From Caecitellus pseudoparvulus (Eukaryota; Protista; Bigyra: Bicosoecida): a DNA stretch of 19,666 bases. How positions within the stretch are numbered: position 1 is the first letter of the stretch; every line of letters starts with the position of its first letter. Below, piece after piece: positions 1-19,666 of this stretch. The position numbers were made by a program, and so were the translations under genes. Below the pieces are notes generated by a model. That model was given only the letters and a program-made list of their open reading frames with translations. It ran no database searches and was not told the DNA's origin. The DNA lies in assembly GCA_965644315.1 (NCBI GenBank), contig CBFFRQ010000157.1, positions 1-19,666 on the forward strand. Reading direction: 5' to 3'.

Positions 1-2445
1 GGCTGCCTGCCTAGCCAACCCTCCAGCCTCAAGGCATGATTGCAGTGAGATGACTCGATCACCCGTCAGAGCCAGCAGCTCACACACAACAGCCAAGTGT
101 CCGTTCTCACAGGCAACCCTGAAGGCAGCCTCAGGACTACCCTTGAATGCGGCATGGACATCCACGGCTCGATCACCTGTCAGCGCCAGCAGCTCACGCA
201 CCACGTCAATGTGCCCGTTCGCACAGGCACGTCGGAAGCCATACTCAGGGTCACCCTTGACCCCTGCATGCACATCCACGGCTCGATCACCCGTCAGAGC
301 CAGCAGCTCACGCACCACGTCAATGTGACCGTTCTGGCAGGCAAGCAGGAAGCCCCACTCAGGGTCGCCATTGACCCCTGCATGCACATCCACGGCTCGA
401 TGTCCGCTCAGCGCCAGCAGCTCACGCACCACCTCCACGTGGCCGTTCTGGCAGGCAATCAAGAAGCCGTGCTCAGGGTGGCCCTTGAAGCCTGCATGCA
501 CATCCACGGCTCGATGTCCGCTCAGCGCCAGCAGCTCACGCACCACGTCAATGTGGCCGTTCTCACAGGCACGTCGGAAGCCCCACTCAGGGTCACCCTT
601 GACCCCTGCATGCACATCCACGGCTCGATGTCCGCTCAGCGCCAGCAGCTCACGAACCACGTCAATGTGCCCGTTCGCACAGGCAAGTCGGAAGCCCCAC
701 TCAGGGTCACCCTTGACCCCTGCATGCACATCCACGGCTCGATCACCCGTCAGCGCCAGCAGCTCACGCACCACGTCAATGTGCCCGTTTTGGCAGGCAG
801 CCAGGAAGCCCCACTCAGGGTCGCCATTGACCCCTGCATGCACATCCACGGCTCGATCACCCGTCAGCGCCAGCAGCTCACGCACCACGTCAATGTGCCC
901 GTTCTGGCAGGCAAGTCGGAAGCCATACTCAGGGTCGCCATTGAAGCCTGCATGCACATCCACAGCTCGATCACCCGTCAGAGCCAGCAGCTCACGCACC
1001 ACCTCCACGTGCCCATTCGCACAGGCAAGTCGGAAGCCATACTCAGGGTCCCCCTTGACCCCTGCATGCACATCCACGGCTCGATGTCCGCTCAGCGCCA
1101 GCAGCTCACGCACCACGTCAATGTGCCCGTTCGCACAGGCAGCACGGAAGCCGTACTCAGGGTCGCCCTTGACCCCTGCATGCACATCCACGGCTCGATC
1201 ACCCGTCAGCGCCAGCAGCTCACGCACCACGTCAATGTGCCCGTTCGCACAGGCAAGTCGGAAGCCATACTCAGGGTCACCCTTGACCCCTGCATGCACA
1301 TCCACGGCTCGATCACCCGTCAGCGCCAGCAGCTCACGCACCACGTCAATGTGCCCACACGCACAGGCAAGTCGGAAGCCAGCCTCAGGGTGGCCCTTGA
1401 CCCCTGCATGCACATCCATGGCTCGATCACCCGTCAGCGCCAGCAGCTCACGCACCACCTCCACGTGGCCGTTCTGGCAGGCAAGTCGGAAGCCATACTC
1501 AGGGTCGCCATTGAAGCCTGCATGCACATCCACGGCTCGATGTCCGCTCAGAGCCAGCAGCTCGCGCACCACGTCAATGTGCCCATTCGCACAGGCACGT
1601 CGGAAGCCATACTCAGGGTCGCCCTTGACCCCTGCATGCACATCCACGGCTCGATCACCCGTCAGCGCCAGCAGCTCACGCACCACCTCCACGTGGCCGT
1701 TCTGGCAGGCAAGTCGGAAGCCATACTCAGGGTGGCCCTTGACCCCTGCATGCACATCCACGGCTCGATGTCCGCTCAGCGCCAGCAGCTCACGCACCAC
1801 GTCAATGTGCCCGTTCGCACAGGCAAGTCGGAAGCCATACTCAGGGTCGCCCTTGACCCCTGCATGCACATCCACGGCTCGATCACCCGTCAGCGCCAGC
1901 AGCTCACGCACCACCTCCACGTGGCCGTTCTGGCAGGCAAGTCGGAAGCCAGCCTCAGGGTGGCCCTTGACCCCTGCATGCACATCCACGGCTCGATGTC
2001 CGCTCAGCGCCAGCAGCTCACGCACCACGTCAATGTGGCCGTTCTCACAGGCAAGTCGGAAGCCAGCCTCAGGGTCGCCCTTGACCCCTGCATGCACATC
2101 CACGGCTCGATGTCCGCTCAGAGCCAGCAGCTCACGCACCACCTCCACGTGGCCGTTCTGGCAGGCAGCCAGGAAGCCATACTTAGGGCCAACCTCATCT
2201 TGTGCATGTATGTCCACAACAAGATCCCCCTCCAAAGCCAACAGCCCACGCAGCAGCCCAACGTTTCCTTTCTTGCACGCCACCAAAAAGCCAGCTGACA
2301 TCTCCTCGCTTGACAAGCCTCCCAGACCCACACCCGCACCACCACCGCACCTCTCAAGTATGCTCAGCAATACATCTACCTGCTCACCATCACATGCAGC
2401 CTTCCATCGACCCACCAACGACTGACTGCCGCTGTCGTCGTCCAT
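1..2445 (-). CDS. Ankyrin-like repeat protein A (38-aa repeats, ~20 units), 3' end outside the window
   Basis: Translated by hand; not in the ORF track because there is no stop in the window. ATG at 2445 in context CCACGCCATGG, reading MDDDSGSQSLVGRWKAACDGEQVDVLLSILE..., then repeats like AVDVHAGVKGDPEYGFRLACANGHIDVVRELLALTGDR, ending ...VISLQSCLEAGGLARQAA at base 1 in the same frame (>=815 aa). The A-C-x-x-G-H-x-D-V-V-R-E-L-L motif fits the ankyrin consensus; N- and C-terminal parts match paralogues B-E. Confidence 0.9.
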   Translation of the reverse strand, partial: MDDDSGSQSLVGRWKAACDGEQVDVLLSILERCGGGAGVGLGGLSSEEMSAGFLVACKKGNVGLLRGLLALEGDLVVDIHAQDEVGPKYGFLAACQNGHVEVVRELLALSGHRAVDVHAGVKGDPEAGFRLACENGHIDVVRELLALSGHRAVDVHAGVKGHPEAGFRLACQNGHVEVVRELLALTGDRAVDVHAGVKGDPEYGFRLACANGHIDVVRELLALSGHRAVDVHAGVKGHPEYGFRLACQNGHVEVVRELLALTGDRAVDVHAGVKGDPEYGFRRACANGHIDVVRELLALSGHRAVDVHAGFNGDPEYGFRLACQNGHVEVVRELLALTGDRAMDVHAGVKGHPEAGFRLACACGHIDVVRELLALTGDRAVDVHAGVKGDPEYGFRLACANGHIDVVRELLALTGDRAVDVHAGVKGDPEYGFRAACANGHIDVVRELLALSGHRAVDVHAGVKGDPEYGFRLACANGHVEVVRELLALTGDRAVDVHAGFNGDPEYGFRLACQNGHIDVVRELLALTGDRAVDVHAGVNGDPEWGFLAACQNGHIDVVRELLALTGDRAVDVHAGVKGDPEWGFRLACANGHIDVVRELLALSGHRAVDVHAGVKGDPEWGFRRACENGHIDVVRELLALSGHRAVDVHAGFKGHPEHGFLIACQNGHVEVVRELLALSGHRAVDVHAGVNGDPEWGFLLACQNGHIDVVRELLALTGDRAVDVHAGVKGDPEYGFRRACANGHIDVVRELLALTGDRAVDVHAAFKGSPEAAFRVACENGHLAVVCELLALTGDRVISLQSCLEAGGLARQAA
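60..2290. repeat. Tandem coding array of 114-bp units (19 near-identical plus 1 degenerate)
   Basis: GCCAGCAGCT recurs at 71, 185, 299, 413 ... 2123 (period 114), with a degenerate copy at 2237. Confidence 0.95.
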
Positions 2446-2760
2446 GGCGTGGTGGGGTTGCGTATGGCGGAAGGGCTGCCGCCAAACACCTCACCTGCAC
2501 AGCTACACAAGCGGCACAGGAAAGCATCTCAGGTGTAGATGTTTCTCACTGTCCTGTGCAGGAAGAAGTCGTGGGTGTTTGTTTTGACACAGTCGTGACA
2601 GTGTCCCACCTGCCTGCGGATTACTGCTGCCTGGCTCGCTCACGCCCATCCATGCAGACTTGCTCAAGCACTGTGCTCCCGAGGCGTGCTGGACAGACCT
2701 CACCCAGGCACACCCACCTCACCAGCACCTCCACCAGCGATATCAATGCTTCGCTGCACA
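2443..2760 (-). promoter_or_regulatory. Conserved 5' flank of the ankyrin genes (5'UTR/promoter, possibly with a splice site)
   Basis: Minus-strand GCTGTGCAGG(T/C)GAG sits 45-48 nt upstream of the ATG in A (2490-2503), B (14694-14707), C (16012-16025) and D (18639-18652); all four share CCACGCCATGG. Similarity between A and C extends ~300 bp upstream. Function is inferred. Confidence 0.5.
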
Positions 2761-3064
2761 CCATGGTGTCCCAAGCTGCTCGGGAGGCCAACGCCCTACC
2801 CCGCTCGGCGACCCCCCCCTCACATGGAACCCGACGAGGTACCGACCTCAAGCTCTGCCGCCTTCCGACGCTAGCGGACGACTCCACATCCCTTGCCGAC
2901 CCCCCCCCCTTCACCCCAATCTAGCCAAGAAAACTTGCCCGCCCCCTGGCTTGGCTGCCTGCATGAACACGGACATCTGTAGCGGAGGCTGCATTCTTGC
3001 CACCTGCCATGACCCCCCCACCTTCCACTTTGTGTGGGTATGCGGGGGGCACACTGTGCCTTTG

Positions 3065-5632
3065 CTACTCATCGGTGCTCTTTGCCAGCAGCTTCAGCAC
3101 TGCCTGGCGCATGGCCTCCGGCAACGCCTCCAAGTCGCTTTCGCGGCCGTACGAAAACGCCACCATGTCGTGCGCCTTGTGCACGGCTGCCTCCTCCAAC
3201 CCTCCTTCACTCGCCAGTGCCAGGAGTCGCATGGCCTGTGCCAGGTCTGGCTCCTGCTGGCCACACCCAGCTCCCAGCAGGCGTGCGTAGTGCAGGTGCC
3301 CGAGGGGAACGCCGGCTTCGGAAGCTGAGCGGATGAGGTCTGCTTCCCGCTCGGCAGCATCCACAGCGCCCCCGTGCAGCTCCTCCCGCATCCAGCACTC
3401 GGCACAGGCTGCAAGGGGGTGGCCCAGGTCAGCTGCCCGGACCATGCACTGGAACGCCGCGGGCCAGCTCGCTTCCACACCCTCGTCTGTGCCGAGGATG
3501 TGACTGAGGCCCAGCCGGAACAGCGTCTCGGCATTGGCATCCTCCCCTGCCTCCAGCATGGCGCTGGCGTCAAAGGGGCTGCTGTCACGGGTGGCCGTGA
3601 CCTCTTCGATGAGCAGCACGGCGCCAGTCTGGCCATATGCAGCTGCTTGCCGCCAACACTCCAGGGCTGCTTCCTCGTCCACCGCCTTGCCGCCGGCACC
3701 TCGCCAGTGTGCCAAGCCCACCAAAACGTGAAGTTCCAGCAGCTCGTCCTGCTCATCGGCTGTCGCGCGGTCCATGATTTCGACTGCCTTGGCAACTGCG
3801 CCGTCAAAGTCCGCCTCCGTCCCCCGCCCTTCCGACATCATCACGGCGACGTAGGATCCTGAATGGATGCAGCCGTACCGCTCATACGCCTCCGACATCA
3901 GTTTATAGCCCTGCGCGTCGTCCGTGGGGCCGCCATACCCGTGCAGGTGAACAAGGGCTGGGTACGTCAGGGCTATGGAGTCATCGCAGCCAGATTCCTG
4001 CAATGCAAGCCACCACCTGCGCACAGCAGCACCGTCCCACACACCGCCGTCCCCGATGGAATAGATCAGACCAGCGCGCATCATGCAGTAGGATGCTCCC
4101 GCCTCTGCGCCCTTCAACCACCAGTGTCGTGAGGCGCGGGCGTTGCGCTGGAAGGAGTGCGTGCCGCTCTCAAACGCAGCACCCATGAAGGTCATGGCAG
4201 AGGAGTACCCCCGCTTGGCCGCAACGTGGGCCCACTTGCCCTCCAGCGCCTCGTCCGCCTCCAGGCCGTGCCCGCCGTGCTCGTACATGATCTTCAAATT
4301 CCACGCGGCGGTGTCGTGGCCAGCCTCCACTGCAGCCTCGTAGTGCTTGGCTGCCTCCACCCAGTCCCGCTCCATGCCGATGCCGGCGTGGTACAGGCGC
4401 CCGATGGCGTTCATGGACTTGGCGTCGCCGCGTGCCGCCGGCTTCGACAACCACTTCAGCGCGCCAGGCCCATCCACCCCGTTCGGCCCACGCCCGTTGG
4501 ACAGCATGTGGCCCAGGTTGTACGCTGCGTTCATGTCGCCCAGCACCGCCGCCTGCTCCATCCACGCACACGCCTCGCCGTCAGACGCCGGCACGCCGGG
4601 CTTGCCTGACGCGTAGATGAACCCCAGCTGCCCACACGCCCGCACATGCCCCGCACTGCCCGCCATACGAAACCACTTCACCGCCTCCGCCATGTCCTTC
4701 GGCACGCCCCGCCCAAAGTAGTACTTGACGCCCAGCTCGAATGCCGCGTCAGCTGCCGTCTGTCCGCCCCCTGTCGCTGTCTGCGCCACCTGCCACAGGC
4801 CCGCCTGCTCCGGCCCCAACGCCTCCTCACACTGCCGCAGGAGGTCCACGCCTTGCTCTGCGCCCAGCTCCCCTGCGATGCGGGCCCACTGCACGGCCCG
4901 GAGGGGGTCCACGGGGACCCGGCCCAGCTCCGCCACCGCATCCACACCCTCCTCCGGTGGGGGCAGCTCCGCCCCATCCGGCCCGGTGGGTGGGTTGCCA
5001 CGGCTGAACAGGTGCGCCATGTCCACAGCCGCTGCTCGGGCGATGCCGGGCTCCAGCGACACGGACGCGCGCTTGAAGAAGGCCAGGCTGTCAGCCGGTG
5101 ACACGTTGCAGGCAGGCACGCCAGGCGGCGGCGGCGTCAGCCCAGCTCGCCCCAGCAAGAGAGACGCTTCCCCTGAGCCGTGCTTGGAGGCGAGGCGCAG
5201 GAACACCTCGGCTTGTTCCGGGTCCACTGGCAACGCCCCTGCTCCGTCGCGGTACACTGCCGCCAGAGCCAGAGCTGCGTTGGCGTCGGCTGAGGAGTGA
5301 GCGGCCTCCAACCAGTCCCACGTGTCAGCGACAGTCGGCCCATCTCCCGCATCCATCAACATCGCCTTTTCAAACGCGTCTGCAGCGCCCTCCACCTCTG
5401 CCTCCATGGCCATGTGCAGGAACTTGCAGGCTCGCAGGGGGTCTGTCGGCGCGCCGTCGCTCCCGGCAAGGAAAGCCGAGCCGACAGAAAACGCCGCCTG
5501 AGCGTCGCCGCCCTCCGCTGCTGCCAAAGACTCCGAGAATGTACGTGTGGGCGCCATGGGTGCGTCCTCTCCGTCCTCTACGCTGGCAGGTGGCCCTCCT
5601 GCCGTCGTTTCCGCGGGTGCAGCAACAGCCAT
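3065..5632 (-). CDS. Sel1-like (SLR/TPR) repeat protein, ~855 aa
   Basis: Long uninterrupted ORF with many Sel1 motifs: AAFELGVKYYFGRGVPKDMAEAVKWFRMAGSAGH, AAYNLGHMLSNGRG, SMNAIGRLYHAGIGMERDWVEAAKHYEAAVEAGH, TLFRLGLSHILG. First ATG (GACATGG) at 5632; the track's 5674 start is not an ATG. Confidence 0.9.
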   Translation of the reverse strand: MAVAAPAETTAGGPPASVEDGEDAPMAPTRTFSESLAAAEGGDAQAAFSVGSAFLAGSDGAPTDPLRACKFLHMAMEAEVEGAADAFEKAMLMDAGDGPTVADTWDWLEAAHSSADANAALALAAVYRDGAGALPVDPEQAEVFLRLASKHGSGEASLLLGRAGLTPPPPGVPACNVSPADSLAFFKRASVSLEPGIARAAAVDMAHLFSRGNPPTGPDGAELPPPEEGVDAVAELGRVPVDPLRAVQWARIAGELGAEQGVDLLRQCEEALGPEQAGLWQVAQTATGGGQTAADAAFELGVKYYFGRGVPKDMAEAVKWFRMAGSAGHVRACGQLGFIYASGKPGVPASDGEACAWMEQAAVLGDMNAAYNLGHMLSNGRGPNGVDGPGALKWLSKPAARGDAKSMNAIGRLYHAGIGMERDWVEAAKHYEAAVEAGHDTAAWNLKIMYEHGGHGLEADEALEGKWAHVAAKRGYSSAMTFMGAAFESGTHSFQRNARASRHWWLKGAEAGASYCMMRAGLIYSIGDGGVWDGAAVRRWWLALQESGCDDSIALTYPALVHLHGYGGPTDDAQGYKLMSEAYERYGCIHSGSYVAVMMSEGRGTEADFDGAVAKAVEIMDRATADEQDELLELHVLVGLAHWRGAGGKAVDEEAALECWRQAAAYGQTGAVLLIEEVTATRDSSPFDASAMLEAGEDANAETLFRLGLSHILGTDEGVEASWPAAFQCMVRAADLGHPLAACAECWMREELHGGAVDAAEREADLIRSASEAGVPLGHLHYARLLGAGCGQQEPDLAQAMRLLALASEGGLEEAAVHKAHDMVAFSYGRESDLEALPEAMRQAVLKLLAKSTDE

Positions 5633-6143
5633 GTCGGCGTGGTGGCGCAAGAGCAGTGCCGCAAGCAGCACCAAGCAGGCAGCGGGTCCGCCCAGCCTTT
5701 CCCGGGCGTAAAGGGGAGGGCTCTCTCAGGCGTGCATACTGTGCTGGTGTGGTGGGGATTGAGTTCATGTGTGTTATATGGAACAGTGCACTTGGATCGA
5801 GTTGTTGGTCCTGACCAGCGGCAACTCACAGCTGCTTCCAATCGTCTTGTGCTGTGAGCGAATTTCCGCAACTACGATGATCATCCACATTTCGCTTCAG
5901 TGCACGCCAATGGCAAACAAAACCCACCCAGCTGACGACCCAGCGAGTGCCCTTGCCGAGACTCCCTTGCCTGAATCTCCAGGGTGTGGCAGGCCGCCCT
6001 CCGGCCGCCCAAACTGCCCGCACCCGCACCAGCTCGTCGTCATGCTGGGTGCGCAGCGCAACGGCAGCGCAGCGCATACCCTCGGGCCGTGCAGCAGGGC
6101 TTTCCGGAGACATGCAGGGCGCCTGGCTGGCAGCATTCGGCGA

Positions 6144-8327
6144 ATGGAGCGTGGCAAGCGCCTGTCCTTGGCTGCCTGCGTCGTGCTGAGCTGCGTGGCC
6201 GCGGTTGTGGGCGGGGTGTGGACGGTGTGGAGCATGTTGGCGGGAGGCGGTCCTGGCGCAGCCGCAGCGTCACTGCAGCGCGCTCGGGCTTGGCAGAAAC
6301 AACTAGGAGATCCGTCCCTACCCGGAAGCAACGGGCGGACGATTGTGCAGTGCCTGGAAGCGGCAGCTCGGCGGCCAGCAAGGTCACCTGCGGAAATTCG
6401 TTCAGCGTTCAGCGGCGCAGGCCACGACAAGCTGCACATCGCAGTGGGATTCGGCACCACCACTCGTGGAGTGGAGGTGCGTGCAGATGCACACTTGACA
6501 GACCTGCCCCTCATGCAGGTGGTGGTGCCGACTCTCTTCATCACTGCCGACGACGGCTTCCGGTACAGCGTTGTGGCTGCGTTTGACGATGACGACCCAG
6601 TGCTGGCCAGCCCGGCACAGCGGGCCATGCTGCAGGCCAGCTTTGCCGCCTTCGCACACTGTGCCCGCCCTGGCCTGGCCGTGCAGCTGTTGCTGGTGCC
6701 ATCTGGCTCCCACCACGCACCCAGTCTGGCACACGCAGCTGCCATGGCGGCAGGGGCTGCAGCGGGTGCAGACTTCCTGTACCGCATCAACGATGATACA
6801 TCGTTCGTCAGCGGCGGCTGGGCGGGGGCCATGGTCCAGGAACTGCTGCTGCGCCGCTGGCCGCCGCTGGTGGGCATGACTGGGCCGAAACACGACAACG
6901 GCAACACGGCCATTCTCACTCACGATTTCACACACGCCACTCACCTGGAGGTGTTCCCTGCGTACTACCCCCACCAGCTGCGCACGTGGTTCACAGACGA
7001 CTGGGTGTCCCATGTGTACGGCATGCGGGGCGGCGTAACGCATGGCGTGGTGGTGGACCACACAACGGGATGGGGGCAACGGTACTCCTCACGCGGCGGC
7101 GACTGCCGCACAATGCTTCGGCTGGTGCGACAGGGCCAGGGCATGCTGCGGGCGTTTCTGCGGTCGCCCCGCCCTGATGCGTTCTGGAGGACCGTCGTGG
7201 ACGTGGCGCGGCGCCTGCCCCGCCCACTGCGCCCGGCGCGCCCCCTCAATGAGTCAAGCCTGCCCCAGGTGCAGGGGTGGCTGGCCCCGAACCCCCCCCT
7301 GACACCCCTCAAGCAGGCCCTGGCTGAGGTGGTGGCGGCAGCAGAGGCGATGGGGGAGCCCCTGACCACGGGGGCCGTGGCCATGTCCTTGCCTGAAACG
7401 CACGAGTCCACTACGATGCTCGCTGCAGTGCGTGCTGCGTTGGCCAGCACTGCAATCATGTACCCACGGTGGCAGCTGTGGCTGTACGCCACGCCACCCG
7501 TGCTGCGTCTGGCAGAAGTCACAGTGCAAGAGGTGCTGGCGGCAGCGGCGCAGGGGGGGGGCGTGGCCGAACTGGCCGCTGCAACGCAGCACGCCCTGCC
7601 AGCTGACTCCTCCATGCCAGACGCGCTGCACTCGCTGCCCCTGGTGCGAGTGCTGCCAGTGCAGGGGTGGCCCGTGGGCGCAGGGCACCTGGCTGCACTG
7701 TCTCAAGCGCCAGCCTTCAATGTGCAGCGGCTGGTGTTCCGGTCGCCCGCGGCCGTTCCGACCTGGCGAGAAGCCGTCGCGGTGGCATCGTGGGTCAACC
7801 GCCAGGACGCAGTGCACGTCATGCGCGATCACAGGTCGCGCCATGCGACACCCCTCGTGGCGGACTTGTGGGGTGTGTTCCTGCGCCCTCGGGGCCGCCA
7901 GCGTACTATGGCCGGTGTCGCGGCAGAGTGGGCGGCGACGCTCAAATTCCGCCTATGCCCCGCTGCGCACAGCAACGGCTCGCCCTGCGACCGCCTGCCC
8001 ACCAGGGCACTGTCGGCAACCCTGTCGGCAGTGGTGTGGCCGTGGGTGCTGGCCACTGGGGACGCCATGGTGCACGACGCGGTGAACTGTGACACGCTTC
8101 GGGGAGGAGCGTTCCCGCTGCCCCGCTCCGAAGGCCCAGATGTCGAGTGGGTGGGCATGCCTCACAAAGGAGGCACAACAGTGCACAGCGCCGTGGCACG
8201 GGAGGAACTGGCGGAGGTGTGTCATCCATGCGACCTGAGGTCGTGCCAGGGCCCCTTGAACGGCCAGGAGCTGCTGCCCTTGCTCCAGGCCACTGCGGGC
8301 GGGTGGGGCCACGCCCCCGCCTGCTGA
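6144..8327 (+). CDS. Putative type II membrane glycosyltransferase-like protein with two GT-A-like domains
   Basis: Basic residues plus a hydrophobic signal-anchor (MERGKRLSLAACVVLSCVAAVVGGVWTVW). Domain 1 (~6550-7025) has VVAAFDDDD, ADFLYRINDDTSF, GMTGP, ILTHDF, TWFTDDWVSHVY (GT2-like). Domain 2 (~7455-8160) has YPRWQLWLY, REAVAVASW, HVMRDH, LWG, VWP, HDAVNC, FPLPR, WVG. Family assignments are from motif recall, not a search. Start uncertain: in-frame upstream starts at 6042, 5910 and the track's 5769. Confidence 0.72.
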   Translation: MERGKRLSLAACVVLSCVAAVVGGVWTVWSMLAGGGPGAAAASLQRARAWQKQLGDPSLPGSNGRTIVQCLEAAARRPARSPAEIRSAFSGAGHDKLHIAVGFGTTTRGVEVRADAHLTDLPLMQVVVPTLFITADDGFRYSVVAAFDDDDPVLASPAQRAMLQASFAAFAHCARPGLAVQLLLVPSGSHHAPSLAHAAAMAAGAAAGADFLYRINDDTSFVSGGWAGAMVQELLLRRWPPLVGMTGPKHDNGNTAILTHDFTHATHLEVFPAYYPHQLRTWFTDDWVSHVYGMRGGVTHGVVVDHTTGWGQRYSSRGGDCRTMLRLVRQGQGMLRAFLRSPRPDAFWRTVVDVARRLPRPLRPARPLNESSLPQVQGWLAPNPPLTPLKQALAEVVAAAEAMGEPLTTGAVAMSLPETHESTTMLAAVRAALASTAIMYPRWQLWLYATPPVLRLAEVTVQEVLAAAAQGGGVAELAAATQHALPADSSMPDALHSLPLVRVLPVQGWPVGAGHLAALSQAPAFNVQRLVFRSPAAVPTWREAVAVASWVNRQDAVHVMRDHRSRHATPLVADLWGVFLRPRGRQRTMAGVAAEWAATLKFRLCPAAHSNGSPCDRLPTRALSATLSAVVWPWVLATGDAMVHDAVNCDTLRGGAFPLPRSEGPDVEWVGMPHKGGTTVHSAVAREELAEVCHPCDLRSCQGPLNGQELLPLLQATAGGWGHAPAC

Positions 8328-8762
8328 TGAAACGGCATGCAATGTGACCGAGCGTACACGGTGTGTACTAGATGACGGTATCCACAGTCACCTGGCAAGG
8401 CGCTGTGCATTGAAGGTGCTGCTGCCATGCTTTTCATGCTCCCCATTCACTCTACCGCCCCAAGGCACGGGCAAGGGCGCCGGCCTCCAGCGGAATGCAC
8501 ACCCATCGTCTGTTCGCTGCATTGCTCCATTGTTGATGCTCACGAGTTCCACTTTGCCCGTCAACAACCCAAGCCGCCTGGCCTCGGAACTGCCAAGCTT
8601 TGGAGGCAGCACCCTCCTCCAAGGGTTGGTACTCAGGCTCAAGCTCCAAGCCACGCACGCCACAAGTGGTTTGAATAGCTCACACACGCTGGTCATTCCG
8701 AAGGTGACAGTGGCCGTGGCGACTTGCGCCGTGCAGCGTGGAGCCCACACATGCACCGCCCT

Positions 8763-11230
8763 TCAGTCCGAGCGTGGAGCCTTCCCTGATGGAGACACCA
8801 ACGCTGAGCCGGTCTGTGGCCGTGGACGCTTCCTTGCCCTCTTTGCGCTCCGTAGCAGCAGCACGGCTTTCCGGCCTTGCCGAGTGCTGGTACCGAGCCA
8901 GACGGCATCTCTAGCTGCCTGCATAGCTAGGTCTCCAGCCTCAAGGCGTGATTGCAGTGGGATGGCTCGATGGCCTGTGAGGCCCAGCAGGTCGCGAACA
9001 ACATTCAAATGCCTGTTTTTGCAAGCAAGTCGAAAGCCAGCCTCAAGCTCACCATCAGCCTCGGCATGCACATCCACCTCACGATGTCCAGTCAGCGCCA
9101 GCAGCTCCCGCACCACGTCAACGTGCCCTTCCTGACAGGCAGCTCGAAAGGCACCCTCAGGCCCCAAATTGTCCGAAGCATGCACGTCCACCTCACGATG
9201 CCCAGTCAGCGCCAGCAGCTCCCGCACTACAACAATATGGCCATTCTCACAGGCAGCTCGAAAGCCGTACTCACCATCCACATGTACGTCCACCTCACGA
9301 TGCCCGGTCAGCGCCAGCAGCTCCTGCAGCACGTCGATGTGCCCATGCTTACAAGCAAGCAGGAAGCCTTGCTCAGGGTAACCCTCAGGCCCAGCATGCA
9401 CATCCACCTCTCGAGCACCAGTCAGCGCCAACAGCTCTCGCACCACATCAAGATGGCCTTCATGGCAGGCCTTTTGGAAAGCACACTCAGGATTGTCCCC
9501 GACCCCTGCATGCACATCCACCTCTCGAGCACCAGTCAGCGCCAACAGCTCTCGCACCACATCAAGATGGCCTTCATGGCAGGCCTTTTGGAAAGCACAC
9601 TCAGGATTGTCCCCGACCCCTGCATGCACATCCACCTCGCGATGCCCGGTCAGCGCCAGCAGCTCCCGCACCACGTCAATGTGCCCATGCATACAAGCAA
9701 GCAGGAAGCCTTGCTCAGGATTGCCCTCAGGTCCAGCATGTACGTCCACCTCACGATGCCCAGTCAGCGCCAGCAGCTCCCGCACTACAACAATATGGCC
9801 ATTCTCACAGGCAGCTCGAAAGCCGTACTCACCATCCACATGTACGTCCACCTCACGATGCCCGGTCAGCGCCAGCAGCTCCCGCACCACGTCAATGTGC
9901 CCATGCATACAAGCAAGCAGGAAGCCTTGCTCAGGATTGCCCTCAGGTCCAGCATGTACGTCCACCTCACGATGCCCAGTCAGCGCCAGCAGCTCCCGCA
10001 CTACAACAATATGGCCATTCTCACAGGCAGCTCGAAAGCCGTACTCACCATCCACATGTACGTCCACCTCACGATGCCCGGTCAGCGCCAGCAGCTCCTG
10101 CAGCACGTCGATGTGCCCATGCTTACAAGCAAGCAGGAAGCCTTGCTCAGGGTAACCCTCAGGCCCAGCATGCACATCCACCTCGCGATGCCCGGTCAAA
10201 GACAGCAGCTCCCGCACCACGTCGATGTGCCCATGCATACAAGCAAGCAGGAAGCCTTGCTCAGGATTGCCCTCAGGCCCAGCATGCACATCCACCTCTC
10301 GAGCACCAGTCAGCGCCAACAGCTTTCGCACCACATCAAGATGGCCTTCATGGCAGGCCTTTTGGAAAGCACACTCAGGATTGTCCCCGACCCCTGCATG
10401 CACATCCACCTCGCGATGCCCGGTCAGCGCCAGCAGCTCCCGCACCACGTCAATGTGCCCATGCATACAAGCAAGCAGGAAGCCTTGCTCAGGATTGCCC
10501 TCAGGTCCAGCATGTACGTCCACCTCACGATGCCCAGTCAGCGCCAGCAGCTCCCGCACTACAACAATATGGCCATTCTCACAGGCAGCTCGAAAGCCGT
10601 ACTCACCATCCACATGTACGTCCACCTCACGATGCCCGGTCAGCGCCAGCAGCTCCTGCAGCACGTCGATGTGCCCATGCTTACAAGCAAGCAGGAAGCC
10701 TTGCTCAGGGTAACCCTCAGGCCCAGCATGCACATCCACCTCGCGATGCCCGGTCAAAGACAGCAGCTCCCGCACCACGTCGATGTGCCCATGCATACAA
10801 GCAAGCAGGAAGCCTTGCTCAGGATTGCCCTCAGGCCCAGCATGCACATCCACCTCTCGAGCACCAGTCAGCGCCAACAGCTCTCGCACCACATCAAGAT
10901 GGCCTTCATGGCAGGCCTTTTGGAAAGCACACTCAGGATTGTCCCCGACCCCTGCATGCACATCCACCTCGCGATGCCCGGTCAGCGCCAGCAGCTCCCG
11001 CACCACGTCAATGTGCCCATGCATACAAGCAAGCAGGAAGCCTTGCTCAGGATTGCCCTCAGGCCCAGCATGCACATCCACCTCGCGATGCCCTCTCAGC
11101 GCCAGCAGCTCTCGCACCACATCAATGTGCCCATTGTGACAGGCAGCTCGGAAGCCCCACTCGGGCCGGCCCTCAGGCCCAGCATGCACATCCACCTCAC
11201 GATGCCCCGTCAGCGCCAGCAGCTCTCGCA
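8763..11230 (-). CDS. Ankyrin-like repeat protein B, 3' part (about 20 repeats plus basic tail), downstream of the insertion
   Basis: Open frame begins mid-repeat (RELLALTG; the track start is a TTG straddling the junction), lacks the family N-terminal cap, ends ...RSAKRARKRPRPQTGSALVSPSGKAPRSD*. Confidence 0.88.
9850..11085. repeat. Higher-order repeat: 558-bp block (4 x 114 bp plus one 102-bp short unit), ~2.2 copies
   Basis: Diagnostic GGTCAAAGACAGC at 10194 and 10752 (558 apart); unit order PEGNPEQ/VGDNPEC/PEGNPEQ/PEGYPEQ/VDGEY occurs twice in the translation. Confidence 0.9.
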
Positions 11231-11239
11231 AAATCCAAC

Positions 11240-11279
11240 GGCCTTCGGCCTATGCCTTCGGCATGGGAGGTCTACTCCC
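11240..11279. repeat. Three adjacent mini-hairpins at the element end
   Basis: GGCC-TTC-GGCC (11240-11250), ATGCC-TTC-GGCAT (11252-11264), GGGAG-GTCTA-CTCCC (11265-11279). The first two have GAA loops on the minus strand. Confidence 0.9.
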
Positions 11280-12483
11280 CGTCCCTCTGTGCCCGGCTGC
11301 TGGCCCTTCAGAAAGCCACGGCAAAGGCTGCAGGCGTGGGGGGCGCTGCGCCAGTATGGGCGCTGCGCCGCACGACGCACCACCGCACGCAAGGCAAGTC
11401 AGGTACAAGCTGGTCGGCCTTAATGTAAATGCTCCACCAGGCGCACCAGGCTGCAACACTGGCGTATCACAAGCGGTAAGCCTGGTCTCACCCTTCACCA
11501 CAACAAATCGGTCAGGCAGCCTGGCCGCTTTGATGTGTCCACTGAGTCACAGCAAGCCCCGTGGAGCGACCATGGCCATGGCATTGCGCCCAGCGTCTGC
11601 ACCCACATACACCTTGAAATGTCTAGGTGCTTTGCAGGGTGATCCGTGCACCCTTTAGGCATGAGCCCGATGAACAGTCCAGACTTTGATTGCTCACGAA
11701 AATGCGATCTCATGCTGCAATGCACTGGCACACCCTCCGGGATGGCCGACGGAAAAGACAACACAGGGTACACAAAGCTCACTAACGCTTGGAGGGCGGG
11801 GCCTCGTGCTCTGCGGGACGGGACGTACGAGCACATGCTTTCGGAGCAACAAGGTGCCACTTCCACGCACAAGGCCACAGGGCAGGGCTGTGCCCCAACG
11901 GCACTACAAGTGCCATGCGCCTGGCCTGTGGATACAACACTGCATGGCCAGTCTACTGCTTGCTGCACAGTGGCCACTCCTGTGCCGTTGGCTTGTGCAG
12001 GTCTTGCTGTATAGGCGTGCTGACTCTTTTCCGTGCTCGGTGAGCCAGTGCAAGGCCGCTTGAGCACACTGGCGCACTGGCAAGGCGATTCAGGGCATTG
12101 GTAGGTCGTGTAACAAAGGTGATTGTGCTGGTAGACTCGGTTGTGCTTGCTGTAGCTTTGAGCAGTGCTGCATTGCTGAGCCTTGCCCTGGCCTGGTGAT
12201 TGGCTGGCGTCTCGCACAGCGCCTTTGTGCTTGCGCAAGCGTACGAGCTCTGATGGCTTGTGCTATAGAGCCATGTGCACTTGCTTGCATCAGTGCCTTG
12301 GTGGCGTGATTGGGGTGGTGCAGGGAGTGCTGTCCGATCCAGGTCGAGGCCTTGCTTGACGGGCCAGTGATTGCTCGGCAGCGGCGTCAGGCCGCCGAGC
12401 TGGGGCTGCAAGCTTGGGCGCCGACTCGTCCATGTGCATGTGCTTGAACTGTATGCATTGCTTGGTATGCGGCAAATGGAACA

Positions 12484-12555
12484 GCTGCCGTCGGTCTCGC
12501 TGCCATGCGCGCTGCGCCAGCAGCGCGCATGGCAGCGAGACCGACTGAAGGCAGC
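12484..12555. repeat. Perfect 26-bp inverted repeat with 4-nt loop
   Basis: GTCGGTCTCGCTGCCATGCGCGCTGC (12490-12515), loop GCCA, GCAGCGCGCATGGCAGCGAGACCGAC (12520-12545); extended by GCTGCC/GGCAGC (12484-12489/12550-12555) across a 4-nt bulge. Confidence 0.95.
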
Positions 12556-13430
12556 GCACTTGCTTGAGAATAGCAGTCCGGCCATGGCGTGGCCTGCGTG
12601 TGGTCCATGCTGGACCCAGGCATGAGCGGTGGGCGTGATGCCTCTGGCTACGCCGCCAGCACATGGAGGAGAATGCCAGCTTCCTCTGCTGCCTTGGGCT
12701 TCGAAGCCATCGCCACGCAATGCAGGGCCAATCGAAGGTGGTTCAGGCCATTGGCTACTGTCGCAGCGGAGGGGGGCGCGATTGGCATACCAAGCTTCCT
12801 ACAATGCATACAAGCTGGTTCCAGATGCAGCACTTGCACAGTGCTTCGCACACGCTGCACAGCGCAAGCAATCATGACGTCATCAATGCGTTTCGCGACA
12901 ATATCAGCCTGGAAACCTGCGCATTGACAGATTCCTGCACGGTGAGCGCGCCGCGGAACGGAAGAAGCCTGACAATATAGACTTACACACGAAACACAGG
13001 CGCAGTCTGTGAATCGGAGAGTTGGAGCACAGCCGTCGCAAGCAGGGCGAGTCTGCGTTTGCCGTGAAACTCGACTAAGAAGGGCCAGTGCAGCGCGAGG
13101 GGTGGCTCTGCCCAGACCGCTACACATGCAAGAAGACAGACAATACTGAATGAGATTGTGTCTAAGGGTCCAATGTGGGATTGCCTGTCTGATCGGAGTG
13201 CAGGCACGGCCTGGAGTTCGACAGGCAAGCAATTTCCGCCTCAACAAGACCGCCTCACGCACACCAAAATGCCAGAGACTGCGAGCATTGACTCTGTTTA
13301 GCCTATTCGGTGTCTGATGTATCTGTTGAATGCATTGTCTTGTCGAGAACTGCCCGCATGCCAACCTTTATGTGCCCCATTGACAGGCCTGTCCCCCCAG
13401 ACCCCCACACCCTAGGACGGGGATTAGGAA

Positions 13431-14649
13431 CAACATCAATGTGCCCATGCTTACAAGCAAGCCGGAAGCCAGCCTCTGGCCAGCCCTCAACCCCAGCATG
13501 CACGTCCACCTCACGATGCCCGGTCAGCGCCAGCAGCTCTCGCACCACGTCAATGTGCCCATGCTTACAAGCAAGCCGGAAGCCAGCCTCTGGCCAGCCC
13601 TCAACCCCAGCATGCACGTCCACCTCACGATGCCCGGTCAGCGCCAGCAGCTCCCGCACCACGTCAATGTGCCCTCCCTGACAAGCAAGCAGGAAGCCTC
13701 GCTCAGGATTGTCCTCAGGCCCAGCATGCACATCCACCTCACGAAGCCCGGTCAGCGCCAGCAGCTCCCGCACCACGTCAATGTGCCCGAACTCACAGGC
13801 AAGCCGGAAGCCATGCTCAGGATTACCCTCAGGCCCAGCATGCACATCCACCTCGCGGTGGCCGGTCAGCGCCAGCAGCTCCCGCACCAAGTCAATGTGC
13901 CCTTCCTGACAGGCAGCTCGGAAGCCAGCCTCGGGCCGGCCCTCAGGCCCAGCATGCACATCCACCTCGCGGTGCCCGGTCAGAGCCAGCAGCTCACGCA
14001 GCACATCAATGTGCCCGTTCTGACAGGCAACCTGGAAGCCAGCCTCTGGCCAGCCCTCAACCCCAGCATGCACATCCACCTCGCGGTGCCCGGTCAGAGC
14101 CAGCAGCTCCCGCACCACGTCGATGTGCCCATGCTTACAAGCAAGCAGAAAGCTTTGCTCAGGGTAACCCCTGAGAGCAGCATGCACGTCCACCTCGCGA
14201 TGCCCGGTCAAAGACAGCAGCTCCCGCACCACGTCGATGTGCCCATGCTTACAAGCAAGCCGGAAGCCATGCTCAGGATTACCCTCAGGCCCAGCATGCA
14301 CATCCACCTCGCGGTGGCCGGTCAGCGCCAGCAGCTCCCGCACCAAGTCAATGTGCCCTTCCTGACAGGCAGCTCGGAAGCCAGCCTCGGGCCTGCCCCC
14401 AACCCCAGCATGCACGTCCACCTCCCGATGCCCGGTCAGCGCCAGCAGCCCACGCAACAACCCAACGTGCCCCGTCTTGCAAGCAACCACAAAGCCAGCC
14501 GAGGTGTCAGCACTCGACAAACCTCCCAACTCCACACCCACACCATCTCCACACCCGTCCAGGATGCTCATCAGCTCATCTGCCTGATCACCATCACATG
14601 CAGCCTTCCATCGCCCCTCCACTGACTCACTGCCGCCCTCGTCAGCCAT
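13431..14649 (-). CDS. Ankyrin-like repeat protein B, 5' part (N-terminal cap plus ~10 repeats), upstream of the insertion
   Basis: ATG at 14649 (CCACGCCATGG; MADEGGSESVEGRWKAACDG). Repeats run to GHIDVV, after which the ORF reads about 40 unrelated codons into the element to a stop at 13303; the family C-terminal tail is absent. Confidence 0.88.
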
Positions 14650-14853: not shown

Positions 14854-15966
14854 TCAGTCAGAGCGTGGAGCCTTCCCTGATGGAGACACCAACGCTGAGC
14901 CGGTCTGTGGCCGTGGACGCTTCCTTGCCCTTCTTGCGCTCCGTAGCAACAACACGGCTTTCCGACCCTGCCGAGTGCTGGTGCCGAGCCAGACGGCATC
15001 CTTGGCCGGCTGCACGCCTACCTCTCCAGCCTCAAGACGTTCCTGCAGTGGGATGGCTCGATGACCAGTGAGGCCTAGAAGCTCGCGCAGTACATGCTTA
15101 TGACCACCAAGAAGGGCATACTGGAAGCCATAGCCGGGCCGATTTTGGCGTCCCGCGTGTACGTCCACGGCTCGATGTCCGCTCAGGCCCAGCAATTCCC
15201 GTACCACATCAATGTGCCCATTCTGACAGGCAAGTCGGAAGCCAGCCTCAGGTCCAAGCCAATCTTCTGCGTGCACGTCCACCTCACGATGCCCGGTCAG
15301 CGCCAGCAGCTCAAGTGTGACGGCCACGTGGCCGTTCTCACAGGCTTTTCGGAAGCCAGCCTCAGGCCTTCCCTCAGGTCCAGCATGTACGTCCACCTCA
15401 CGATGCCCCGTCAGCGCCAGCAGCTCCCGCACCACGTCAATGTGTCCGTTGGCACAGGCCTGTCTGAAGCCTGCCTCAGCGGCAAGCCAATCTTCTCCAT
15501 GCACATCCACTTCACGATGGTCAGTCAAGGCCAACAGCTCACGCACCACATCCGCATGCCCGTTCTCACAGGCAACTCGGAATCCGTACTCAGGATTGCC
15601 CTCAGGCCCAGCATGCACATCAACTTCACGATGCCCAGTCAAAGCCAGCAGCTCGCGCACGGTTTGCACATGCCCATTCGCACAAGCCTCACGGAAACCA
15701 GTCTCAGGGTAGCCATCGAGTCCTGCATGTACGTCCACTGCAAGCCCCCCCTCCAATGCCAACAGCCTACGTAGCAGCTCAACATGCCCTGTCACACAAG
15801 CAACCACAAAGCCAGCCGTTGTCTCCTCACTTGACAACCCATCCAGCCCCGCACCCGCACCACCACCAAAGCCCTCAAGCATGCTCATCAGCATATCTGC
15901 CTGCTCTCCATCACATGCAGCGTGCCATCGATTCACCACCGTCTGGTTGTCGCCACCAACGGCCAT
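14854..15966 (-). CDS. Ankyrin-like repeat protein C (370 aa, ~7 repeats)
   Basis: Family-conserved start MAVGGDNQTVVNRWHAACDG at 15966, 38-aa repeats, full basic tail. The track's upstream extension to 16647 is not supported by the paralogues. Confidence 0.88.
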   Translation of the reverse strand: MAVGGDNQTVVNRWHAACDGEQADMLMSMLEGFGGGAGAGLDGLSSEETTAGFVVACVTGHVELLRRLLALEGGLAVDVHAGLDGYPETGFREACANGHVQTVRELLALTGHREVDVHAGPEGNPEYGFRVACENGHADVVRELLALTDHREVDVHGEDWLAAEAGFRQACANGHIDVVRELLALTGHREVDVHAGPEGRPEAGFRKACENGHVAVTLELLALTGHREVDVHAEDWLGPEAGFRLACQNGHIDVVRELLGLSGHRAVDVHAGRQNRPGYGFQYALLGGHKHVLRELLGLTGHRAIPLQERLEAGEVGVQPAKDAVWLGTSTRQGRKAVLLLRSARRARKRPRPQTGSALVSPSGKAPRSD

Positions 15967-16794: not shown

Positions 16795-18591
16795 TCAATC
16801 AGAGCGTGTACCCTTTCCTGGTGGAGACACCAACGCTTGGCAAGTCTGTGGCCACGATCGTGCTTGTGCTGCTCGGGAAGCCCGCAGCAGCAGGACGGCC
16901 ACGCGACCTCGCCGAGTGCTGCTGCCAGCCCACACAGCATCCTTGGCAGGCTGCACAGCTACCTCCCCAGCCTCAAGGCGTGCCCGGAGGGGAATGGCCC
17001 GATGGCCAGTGAGGCCCAGCAGCTCACACAGCACGTATAGATGCCCATCCTCGCACGCACGGCGAAAGCTAGCCTCAGGTCCACACCAGTCTTTAGCGTG
17101 TACATCCACTTCGCGATGTCCGCTCAGAGCCAAAAGGACGCGCACAACATCAACATGCCCAAACCAACAGGCAACCTGGAAGCCTTGTTCAGGCCTATCC
17201 TCAGGTCCAGCATGCACGTCCACCTCACGATACCCGGAAAGTGCCAATAGCGCACACACAACATCAGTGTGGCCGCTCCGACAAGCTGCTAGGAAGCCAG
17301 CCTCAGGGTCACCATTGAATGCAGCATGAACGTCTACCTCACGAGCTCCTGTAAGAGCCAGCAGCTCATGCACCACATCCAAGTTACCATTGCTGCAGGC
17401 AGCTCGGAAGCCAGCCTCAGGCCAGCCCCCAGCTCCGGCATGCACGTCCACCTCACGATGCCCAGACAAAGCCAGCAGCTCCCGCACCACGTGAATGTGC
17501 CCATGCTGACAGGCAAGCTGGAAAGCATACTCAGGCCCGCCCTCAGGCCCAGCATGCACATCCACCTCGCGATGCCCGGTCAATGCAAGAAGCTCGCGCA
17601 CCACATTCAGATACCCGTACATGCAGGAAACTCGAAGGGCGGCCTCAGGCCCAACAACGTCCCTTGCATGCACGTCCACCTCACGATGCCCGGTCAAAGC
17701 TAGCAGCTCCCGCACTACATCAATGTACCCGAACTCACAGGCAAGTCGGAAGCCAGCCTCAGGCCAGCCCCCAGCTCCGGCATGCACGTCCACCTCACGA
17801 TGCCCAGACAAAGCCAGCAGCTCCCGCACCACGTGAATGTGCCCATGCTGACAGGCAAGCTGGAAAGCATACTCAGGCCCGCCCTCAGGCCCAGCATGCA
17901 CATCCACCTCACGGTGCCCGGTCAATGCAAGAAGCTCGCGCACCACATTCAGATACCCGTACATGCAGGAAACTCGAAGGGCGGCCTCAGGCCCAACAAC
18001 GTCCCTTGCATGCACGTCCACCTCGCGATGACCGGTCAGCGCCAGCAGCTCGCGCACTGCTTCAATGTGTCCATTCGCACAAGCAAGCCGGAAGCCAGCT
18101 TCTGGAGCACCCTCAGGACCCGCATGCAAGTCAACCTCGCGATGCCCGGTCAAGGACAACAGCTCTCGCAGCACCGCTAGATGTCCATTCATGCAAGCTA
18201 GCTGGAAGGCACCCTCAGCAGCATCCCAGAGACCAGCATGCACGTCCACCTCGCGATGACCCTCGAGACCCAACAGCTCGCGCATCAGATCAAGATGCCC
18301 GTTTTCACAGGCAAGCTTGAAGCCAGCCTCAGGCCCATCCTCATCTTCTGCATGTACATCCACTGCCAGATCCCCCTCCAACGCCAACAGCCCACGCAGC
18401 AGCCCAACATGCCCAGTCTTGCAAGCAACCACAAAGCCAGCCGTTGTCTCCTCGCTTGTCAATCCTCCCAGCTCCGGCCCCGCACCGCCACCGCACCTCT
18501 CAAGCATGCTCAGCAGCACATCTGCCTGCTCTCCATCACATGCTGCCTTCCATCGACCCACTACCGACTGCCTGTCGCTGCCAACGGCCAT
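16795..18591 (-). CDS. Ankyrin-like repeat protein D (598 aa, ~13 repeats)
   Basis: Conserved start MAVGSDRQSVVGRWKAACDG at 18591, 38-aa repeats, diverged tail ...RASRAAQARSWPQTCQALVSPPGKGTRSD*. Confidence 0.9.
   Translation of the reverse strand: MAVGSDRQSVVGRWKAACDGEQADVLLSMLERCGGGAGPELGGLTSEETTAGFVVACKTGHVGLLRGLLALEGDLAVDVHAEDEDGPEAGFKLACENGHLDLMRELLGLEGHREVDVHAGLWDAAEGAFQLACMNGHLAVLRELLSLTGHREVDLHAGPEGAPEAGFRLACANGHIEAVRELLALTGHREVDVHARDVVGPEAALRVSCMYGYLNVVRELLALTGHREVDVHAGPEGGPEYAFQLACQHGHIHVVRELLALSGHREVDVHAGAGGWPEAGFRLACEFGYIDVVRELLALTGHREVDVHARDVVGPEAALRVSCMYGYLNVVRELLALTGHREVDVHAGPEGGPEYAFQLACQHGHIHVVRELLALSGHREVDVHAGAGGWPEAGFRAACSNGNLDVVHELLALTGAREVDVHAAFNGDPEAGFLAACRSGHTDVVCALLALSGYREVDVHAGPEDRPEQGFQVACWFGHVDVVRVLLALSGHREVDVHAKDWCGPEASFRRACEDGHLYVLCELLGLTGHRAIPLRARLEAGEVAVQPAKDAVWAGSSTRRGRVAVLLLRASRAAQARSWPQTCQALVSPPGKGTRSD
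17404..18038. repeat. Higher-order 342-bp (3-unit) duplication within gene D
   Basis: CAATGCAAGAAGCTCGCGCA at 17581 and 17923; units RDVVGPEA/PEGGPEY/AGGWPEA occur twice. Confidence 0.9.
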
Positions 18592-18729
18592 GGCGTGGTG
18601 GCTCCACTTTCCGCACCTGATCAGCCTTCGCCACCCAACTCGCCTGCACAGCGACACGGGCGTCACAGCGCAGTATCGCAAGAGTTGCCGATTCCAATGC
18701 CCAATGCAGGGGAATACAATGGATGCTAC

Positions 18730-19666
18730 TTTTGAGGCAGTCATGACAATGTCGTACCTGTTTGACCTGCACTGAGGCTGACACCAGCTCCGCCACCCTC
18801 AGTCAGAGAGTGGAGCCGTCCCTGCTGGACAGCACGAACAATTGGCCGGTCTGTGGCTTGAAAATGGTCTATGCTGCTGGGGCTGCTCGTAGCAGCAGCA
18901 TGACGTTGCGACCCTGTCGAGTGCTGGTGCCGGCCCACGCAGCATCCTTGGCTGCCTGCACAGCTGCCTCTCCAGCCTCAAGGCGTTCCTGCAGTGGGAT
19001 GGCCCGATGGCCAGTGAGGCCCAGCAGCTCCCGCAGTACATGCTTATGACCACAAAGAAGCGCATACTGGAAGCCATAGCCGGGCCTATTTTGGCGTCCC
19101 GCGTGCACGTCCACGGCTCGATGTCCGTTCAGAGCCAGCAGCTCACGCACCACATCAATGTGCCCATTCTGACAGGCAAGTCGGAAGCCAGCCTCAGGTC
19201 CAAGCCAATCTTCTGCGTGCACGTCCACCTCACGATGCCCAGTCAGGCCCAGCAGCTCAAGTGTGACGGCTATGTGGCCGTTCTCACAGGCTTTTCGGAA
19301 GCCAGCCTCAGGCCTTCCCTCAGGTCCAGCATGTACGTCCACCTCACGATGCCCCGTCAAAGCCAGCAGCTCCCGCACCACATCCAAGTGCCCGTTGGTG
19401 CAGGCTTGTCGAAAGCCTGCCTCAGCGGCAAGCCAATCTTCTCTATGAACGTCCACCTCACGATGGTCAGTCAAGGCCAACAGCTCACACACCACATCCG
19501 CATGCCCGTTCTCACAGGCAACTCGGAATCCGTACTCAGGATTGCCCTCAGGCCCTGCATGAACATCAACTTCACGATGCCCAGTCAAAGCCAGCAGCTC
19601 GCGCACGGTTTGCACATGCCCATTCGCACAAGCCTCACGGAAACCAGTCTCAGGGTAGCCATCGAG
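18730..19666. repeat. Segmental duplicate of ~14785-15720 (offset ~3946 bp)
   Basis: AGCCATCGAG ends at 15720 and 19666; spacer motif AGCTCCGCCACCCTCAGTCAGAG at 14841 and 18786. Confidence 0.85.
18869..19666 (-). CDS. Ankyrin-like repeat protein E, 5' end outside the window; close paralogue of C with a shortened tail
   Basis: Frame is open from the window edge (LDGYPETGFREACANGHVQTVRELL...) to TAG at 18869; repeats nearly identical to gene C at offset 3946. Confidence 0.88.
   Translation of the reverse strand, partial: LDGYPETGFREACANGHVQTVRELLALTGHREVDVHAGPEGNPEYGFRVACENGHADVVCELLALTDHREVDVHREDWLAAEAGFRQACTNGHLDVVRELLALTGHREVDVHAGPEGRPEAGFRKACENGHIAVTLELLGLTGHREVDVHAEDWLGPEAGFRLACQNGHIDVVRELLALNGHRAVDVHAGRQNRPGYGFQYALLCGHKHVLRELLGLTGHRAIPLQERLEAGEAAVQAAKDAAWAGTSTRQGRNVMLLLRAAPAA

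Follow-up and report, generated by a model that had tools for sequence, protein, structure and literature searches.

The recognition of intruders and viruses by single-celled eukaryotes is largely an open subject, and the nearest described systems come from fungi and brown algae. Fungal NLRs include proteins with highly conserved ANK, WD40, or TPR repeats, such as the HNWD products of het-d and het-e in Podospora and the ANK NLR Pa_3_8560 (PMC4986451, PMC12222747); repeats are counted as HiC repeats when internal repeat identity is at least 85% over 100 aa. In Ectocarpus, ROCO-LRR and NB-ARC-TPR proteins are candidate receptors (PMC3341825), in which one repeat corresponds to one exon, and it is complete exons, adjacent to a GTPase or NB-ARC domain, that are shuffled. 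Here, we describe an ankyrin-repeat gene of a small marine protist (gene A) that shows the diversification regime of fungal NLRs, a homogenized scaffold with a remixed face, within a receptor-like family that has no NOD switch. By analogy, its array may be said to work as HiC repeat domains do in fungal NLRs, yet the gene is not an NLR, because NOD and effector are absent.

The stretch of DNA analyzed here (the window, 19,666 bp) is the complete small contig C157 of an assembly of 30.6 Mb in 215 contigs, and it is syntenic with C54:235-257 kb. Its features are as follows:

1..2445, minus strand: gene A coding sequence, with its ATG at 2445 and no stop before the contig end (815 aa in the window)
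1..51, minus strand: start of the family's conserved C-terminal cap, 17 aa
52..165, minus strand: unit 19, the divergent last unit
166..2103, minus strand: units 2-18, 17 distinct mosaic ankyrin units of 114 bp/38 aa
2104..2217, minus strand: unit 1, the divergent first ankyrin unit
2218..2445, minus strand: leader of 76 aa, modeled as two helix pairs and taken as a degenerate ankyrin-like N-cap
2446..3064: upstream intergenic DNA, 619 bp, 91-92% identical to two counterparts on C54
3065..8327: Sel1-repeat gene (minus strand) and unclassified gene (plus strand), the synteny anchors, 97% identical to C54:247203-252838
8763..14649, minus strand: gene B, a paralogous ankyrin array split in mid-unit by a 2.2-kb insertion
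11230..13429, minus strand: the insertion in gene B, 2200 bp, non-autonomous and Helitron2-like, with a boundary ambiguous by 1 base
14854..15966, minus strand: gene C, a short paralog with diverged units
8766-8840 and 14857-14930, minus strand: basic NLS-like tails
16795..19666, minus strand: two further ankyrin paralogs, one truncated at the contig end

Gene A contains 19 in-frame ankyrin units, each of exactly 114 bp (38 aa) and none with an indel; TRF likewise reports a period of 114, 18.7 copies, and 0% indels. The 17 internal units all differ from one another, at a mean identity of 89.4% in DNA and 85.8% in protein, and thus share with fungal NLR repeats an internal identity above 85%. 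The first-pass annotation, made from the letters alone, had described a 19-unit array with a nearly invariant scaffold and a small set of recurring alleles at each of a few sites, and this description was confirmed: the loop comes in five types, position 13 is Y/W/A/H, positions 16-17 carry six different dipeptides, position 20 is A/Q/E, and the alternatives HID/HVE and SGH/TGD are both present. The variable unit positions are 7, 8, 10, 13, 16, 17, and 20, on the loop and helix-1 face, together with 24-25, 34, and 36 away from it; M1 and C21 are singleton alleles. Ankyrin is the sole Pfam match (Ank_2, E 1e-68, 228 bits against a cut-off of 27), and the first 304 residues, when modeled with AlphaFold (pLDDT 89), form an ankyrin solenoid whose best structural match is the designed protein ANK-N5C (4o60; Z 23.2, rmsd 2.5 A, 227 residues aligned), so that the proposed fold is upheld by both profile and model. 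We regard gene A as an atypical member of the ankyrin-repeat proteins: relative to the canonical 33-aa TPLH ankyrin, its unit has 38 aa, replaces TPLH by x-G-F-x, and carries a longer outer loop with ~4 additional residues past helix 2. The sites that vary most occupy the place of the TPLH motif. The C-terminal tail probably runs for ~50 aa beyond the contig end, judging from the frame of the C54 counterpart, which has ~66 aa past its last unit. Neither a signal peptide, nor a transmembrane stretch, nor a Pfam domain was seen in the leader, to which the genome holds at least 150 matches (150 scored, haplotigs included). A plus-strand frame of 733 aa at window 97-2298, antisense to gene A, was considered as a real gene and rejected, the ankyrin frame being the one with the coding pattern (heterozygosity by codon position 0.23/0.21/0.47); we read the antisense frame as a by-product of codon usage. 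An Rfam search of the window found nothing.

The internal units are mosaics of one another. Among informative site pairs, 203 of 300 are incompatible, at least nine exchange points are needed within 114 nt (Rm = 9), and incompatibility is lower between neighboring sites than between distant ones (p about 1e-4). For five of the six pairs of multi-nucleotide blocks, every one of the four possible combinations is found, and since blocks of two to four linked substitutions are unlikely to arise twice, this points to shuffling rather than to recurrent mutation. When a history without exchange was simulated (500 runs) along the maximum-likelihood tree, with rates allowed to vary strongly, 0.6% of runs attained the observed incompatibility, and none reached the eight perfectly linked close pairs of gene A (simulated mean 0.07). 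The earlier proposal of recombination or conversion between units is therefore well supported, a tree-only history is rejected, and we consider recombinational shuffling very likely. Alleles at the SGH/TGD marker that closes one unit are linked to codons 19-25 of the following unit, among them a silent site (family-wise p 0.0013), and show no linkage to the intervening codons 6-17, some of which have little power. This is the pattern expected if short patches of conversion had overwritten the loop and the start of helix 1 within an older two-unit frame. The evolutionary mechanism itself is already known; what is new is the copy-to-copy comparison, the signs of short-patch conversion, a repeat lineage held in common with a gene that has a long N terminus, and the existence of giant-virus relatives.

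The copy-to-copy comparison depends on how the window relates to contig C54. Because synteny with C54 holds at 97% identity over the Sel1 gene and its neighbor, and because other strains show heterozygous bubbles (short contigs, Logan), C157 is probably a second haplotype; the alternative is that the C157/C54 pair is a recent duplicate. Between the two copies, the arrays differ in both unit number (19 in gene A vs 24 in the C54 counterpart, C54:253462-256624) and, as assembled, unit order, with non-monotonic best unit matches and a positional identity of 90.5% vs 89.1% for all pairs; for this counterpart, the letters read cover all units up to the last seven, and the paralog at C54:260125 and the C50 array are known by coordinates and identities. 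Some colinearity remains (p 0.01-0.02), 21 minor codon alleles are common to the two copies, and the C54 counterpart contains an exact in-register duplication of 383 nt. Leader and upstream DNA differ by 7-9% between the copies, and with leaders 7% apart the lack of identical units proves little on its own. Gene B is scrambled too, its C54 counterpart (a 1867-aa frame) having a different unit order, whereas gene C, whose units have diverged, is colinear with its C54 counterpart at 99.3% identity and serves as an internal control. In all this, the array resembles fungal NLR repeats, in which repeat number differs between copies and shuffling takes place within and occasionally between genes. 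The regions C54:242425-263500 and window 1-9017 differ in gene content: C54 carries two additional ankyrin genes in the interval that separates gene B from the Sel1 block, and a second partial Sel1 copy followed by an ankyrin gene whose repeats are 76-78% like those of gene A, while the DNA upstream of that extra gene is nonetheless 92% identical.

A more distant comparison is provided by a contig in the assembly of Symbiodinium sp. KB8 (CAJNDU010012395.1, GCA_905221625.1), which is 93-94% identical to window 1971-8927 and apparently represents DNA of a co-cultured relative of the protist, not of the dinoflagellate, since 30.6 Mb of genome with long frames free of introns is unlike a dinoflagellate. 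The coding parts of the Sel1/unclassified-gene region are 96-97% identical to it, and a neighboring gene is 93% identical to a protein of that assembly. At the position of gene A, the first units are 75% identical, vs 96-97% for the neighbor genes. The KB8 gene is, however, closer to a tandem paralog on C54 (84%) than to gene A (80%), so replacement by a paralog is as likely as rewriting. The long plus-strand gene at window 5769-8327, which has no Pfam match, has its single close relative in the same KB8 assembly.

Exchange with other loci appears to be limited. In the other genes whose letters were read, units are at most 77% identical to those of gene A and have at most 48 exact bases in common with them, which indicates that homogenization acts mainly within the gene. 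Unit 19 has matches of 90-93% in two non-allelic genes on C205 and in one of the internal units of the C54 counterpart. Closer to the units of gene A than any cap-only paralog are the ~26 repeats of a 1643-aa frame at C50:45540-50206 (minus strand), at 84-87% identity. They follow a long N-terminal module that has 81 matches in the genome and no Pfam match, and one repeat lineage may thus serve two architectures, cap-only in gene A and long-N-terminus on C50.

Faces of the unit were assigned from DSSP, helical periodicity, and the ankyrin register. Helix 1 spans unit positions 13-21 in the model; the variable positions 13, 16, 17, 20, and 21 form a single 140-degree arc of it, and the fixed positions 14, 15, 18, 19, and 22 the opposite arc. 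By established ankyrin geometry, the concave groove is lined by the variable arc together with loop positions 7, 8, and 10, and in fungal NLR repeats, too, the variable sites fall on the hairpin loop and on the inner helix of the concave side. Across 309 units from ~40 genes of the family, the seven positions 10, 20, 7, 8, 17, 13, and 21 vary the most, and the exposed helix-2 positions 28-29 are nearly fixed. The first-pass annotation had placed the variable sites on the binding face; this stands for the loop and for a single face of helix 1 but not for HID/HVE and SGH/TGD, which map to helix 2 and the outer loop, away from the binding face, and serve instead as markers of shuffling.

The scaffold is clearly under purifying selection. 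For gene A, pN/pS reaches 2.24 on the helix-1 stripe (bootstrap 1.07-4.78), compared with 0.58 for the outer face and 0.13 for the core; the corresponding values in gene B are 1.82, 0.17, and 0.07. The non-synonymous excess that had been anticipated is thus borderline on the stripe, and there is none in the class of sites equivalent to the randomized positions of DARPins (0.8-0.9). A site class defined from other genes gave 1.7 (P 0.06-0.09, several classes tried, uncorrected). The selection signal on the groove of gene A is therefore modest, positive selection is suggestive, which is a further difference from fungal NLRs, and we lean toward diversifying selection on the groove. Under neutral turnover, near-identical units would recombine by likeness, the groove would vary as the least constrained surface, and long homogeneous arrays would be short-lived results of runaway unequal crossing-over in a family that evolves by birth and death. 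This account, which we think rather unlikely, sits well with a whole-unit pN/pS of 0.55, with the DARPin-equivalent class, with the family-wide value at the top variable sites (~0.95, saturated), with silent diversity that is also raised at the groove codons, with the shuffling of off-face markers, and with a neighboring gene split by a transposon. It does not explain, however, why the exposed outer positions 28, 29, 32, and 37 are fixed while groove alleles are chemically radical, or why pN/pS is ~2 on the helix-1 stripe of two genes that use different vocabularies.

Classical DARPins are randomized at consensus positions 2, 3, 5, 13, 14, and 33. For ANK-N5C, the positions are 2, 3, 5, 10, 13, and 33 (PMC8683736, PMC4308713). 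With gene A placed in the DARPin register (the hairpin uncertain by 1), positions 33, 3, and 13 vary, 2 and 5 are fixed, and 14 is nearly fixed. The likeness to DARPins that had been drawn from the letters is accordingly partial: it holds for the architecture and for three of six positions, and fails at the remaining ones and in the pN/pS of the class. Like DARPins and ANK-N5C (PMC8683736, PMC4308713), the protein combines an N-cap, self-compatible near-identical internal repeats, and a C-cap, and varies at residues of the turn and of helix 1, 4o60 being its best fold match. Unlike them, it is natural, has a 38-aa unit, 19 repeats per chain, and two to five alleles per site, and its variable set overlaps the randomized set in part and takes in positions of the TPLH motif. 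The term library, which had also been applied, does not fit, as gene A is one polypeptide and a repertoire exists only across copies and paralogs. As a self-compatible natural scaffold with a 38-aa unit, it is of interest for binder design, and gene A and its counterpart are a natural pair with the same scaffold and different grooves, in which specificity is directly testable.

The comparison with fungal NLR repeats, also made at the outset, is supported for the array (PMC4986451) and ends at its borders. Gene A has no match to NACHT or NB-ARC; its leader has 76 aa, the upstream gap of 619 bp is too short for a NOD domain, and the tail of the C54 counterpart has ~66 aa. No N-terminal effector domain was found, the leader folding as two helix pairs without a Pfam match. 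Other differences are the 38-aa non-TPLH unit, the non-fungal host, and a leader with at least 150 matches. With the Ectocarpus receptors (PMC3341825), the family shares rapid birth-and-death turnover, shuffled repeats, and a diversified set of binding repeats, again in a marine eukaryote that is not an animal, plant, or fungus, but in gene A the array is a single open frame and exchange takes place inside units rather than by whole exons.

The best overall explanation, and in our judgment a probable one, is an intracellular ankyrin binder that is remixed by recombination and has a variable groove and, perhaps, a foreign ligand. As neither a signal peptide nor a membrane segment was seen, and no NOD or effector domain either, we read gene A as encoding such an intracellular binder, which would be a stand-alone solenoid of N-cap, 19 repeats, and C-cap. 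In this account, ordinary homologous recombination between misaligned in-register units homogenizes and remixes the repeats: unequal crossing-over alters the unit number and copies blocks of units, as the two copies show, and conversion patches of tens of bases, seen in the linkage statistics, swap alleles, most visibly in the loop and in the first half of helix 1. Units may occasionally pass between loci. Selection keeps the scaffold fixed and may tolerate or favor change in the concave groove, and each copy could then present another long binding groove, if ankyrin structure is a guide. The likeliest use would be the binding of fast-changing foreign proteins, for example, of giant viruses, virophages, or intracellular bacteria, by a protein that, having no switch itself, may act as a decoy, an inhibitor, or a sensor partner, possibly partnered by the long-N-terminus genes. 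A foreign ligand is suggested by analogy with the fungal NLRs (PMC4986451) and the brown-algal receptors (PMC3341825) and by the repeat type of giant viruses; for the non-self ligand taken by itself, we rate the chance as somewhat below even. A broader scheme, in which at least 150 stand-alone binders and ~80 long-N-terminus ankyrin genes form two tiers of NOD-free recognition that draw on shared repeat pools, with groove patches rewritten in an arms race with giant viruses, we consider doubtful.

With the same shuffling, the proteins could instead do another job, as adaptors or effectors for endogenous or prey proteins, for instance as FEM1-like substrate receptors of ubiquitin ligases or as nuclear regulators. 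FEM1B/C are among the fold matches of the gene A model, the conserved C-terminal cap could dock a partner, and a basic NLS-like tail is present in about a third of members. The fold matches are, however, generic ankyrins; the caps have no match to F-box, SOCS, PRANC, or any other Pfam family at E up to 5 (the tail model is of low confidence), and rapid change of the groove is unexpected for conserved endogenous targets, so that we rank this reading, like neutral turnover, as rather unlikely beside a recombining binder of foreign proteins.

Chimeric repeats can arise in short-read assemblies (PMC12222747), the array lies at a contig end, and the runs from other strains consist of short contigs that are unable to phase units, all of which invites the suspicion that the mosaic was created when so repetitive an array was assembled or polished. 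We regard this as very unlikely, given 19 units without a frameshift, alleles private to one copy that recur in up to five units of that copy only, rare alleles kept in phase by the 383-nt duplication, ordered linkage across ~80 nt with a silent site included, and coverage of every array bin by four other runs. The least probable alternative by our reckoning is a programmed diversifier (cassette conversion, a site-specific recombinase, or a diversity-generating retroelement that rewrites units per cell lineage), which the high density of exchange (Rm 9 in 114 nt) and the centering of patches on the binding face might recall, since there is no adenine bias or adenine-specific variation (variable sites G14, C11, T8, A7, matching composition), no introns, signal sequences, donor cassettes, reverse transcriptase, or recombinase were seen in the window, breakpoints are spread over the unit, and gene C is stable.

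The wider family extends to a giant-virus MAG, GVMAG-S-1103017-74, in which four or more proteins (UniRef A0A6C0AUN4 among the relatives) have related repeats at 42-59% identity. They bear the same non-canonical repeat signature as the gene A family and differ in their 34-aa units, few and diverged repeats, and other termini, and no homogenized arrays were seen among them. Gene exchange between the host lineage and a virus is a possible source of these repeats, as is a contaminated bin; the nearest atlas clusters are mostly viral, which we treat as a lead only. A degenerate pattern for the gene A haplotypes had no match in metagenome contigs, a set that may leave out near-identical genomes, a protein scan of such contigs gave generic ankyrins only, and a literature search found no paper on this ankyrin family or on the giant-virus MAG. 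The NLS-like tails of about a third of the family lie past the conserved C-cap, and the C54 counterpart of gene A has room for one. In the distal part of gene B (window 8763-11230), there are multi-unit block duplications and recurring short units of 34 aa, which is the unit length of distant relatives.

The insertion that splits gene B has asymmetric inverted repeats of 13 bp, an ATTTT end, no target duplication, and a hairpin with 31-bp arms at 12485-12550; its ORFs match no Pfam family. The ATTTT end resembles that of non-canonical Helitron2 elements (PMC5148889). Near-identical copies occur on C175, C68, and C56, and the same junction is found in ankyrin units on C68, C175, and C202, which points to a fixed target site for the Helitron2-like insertion.
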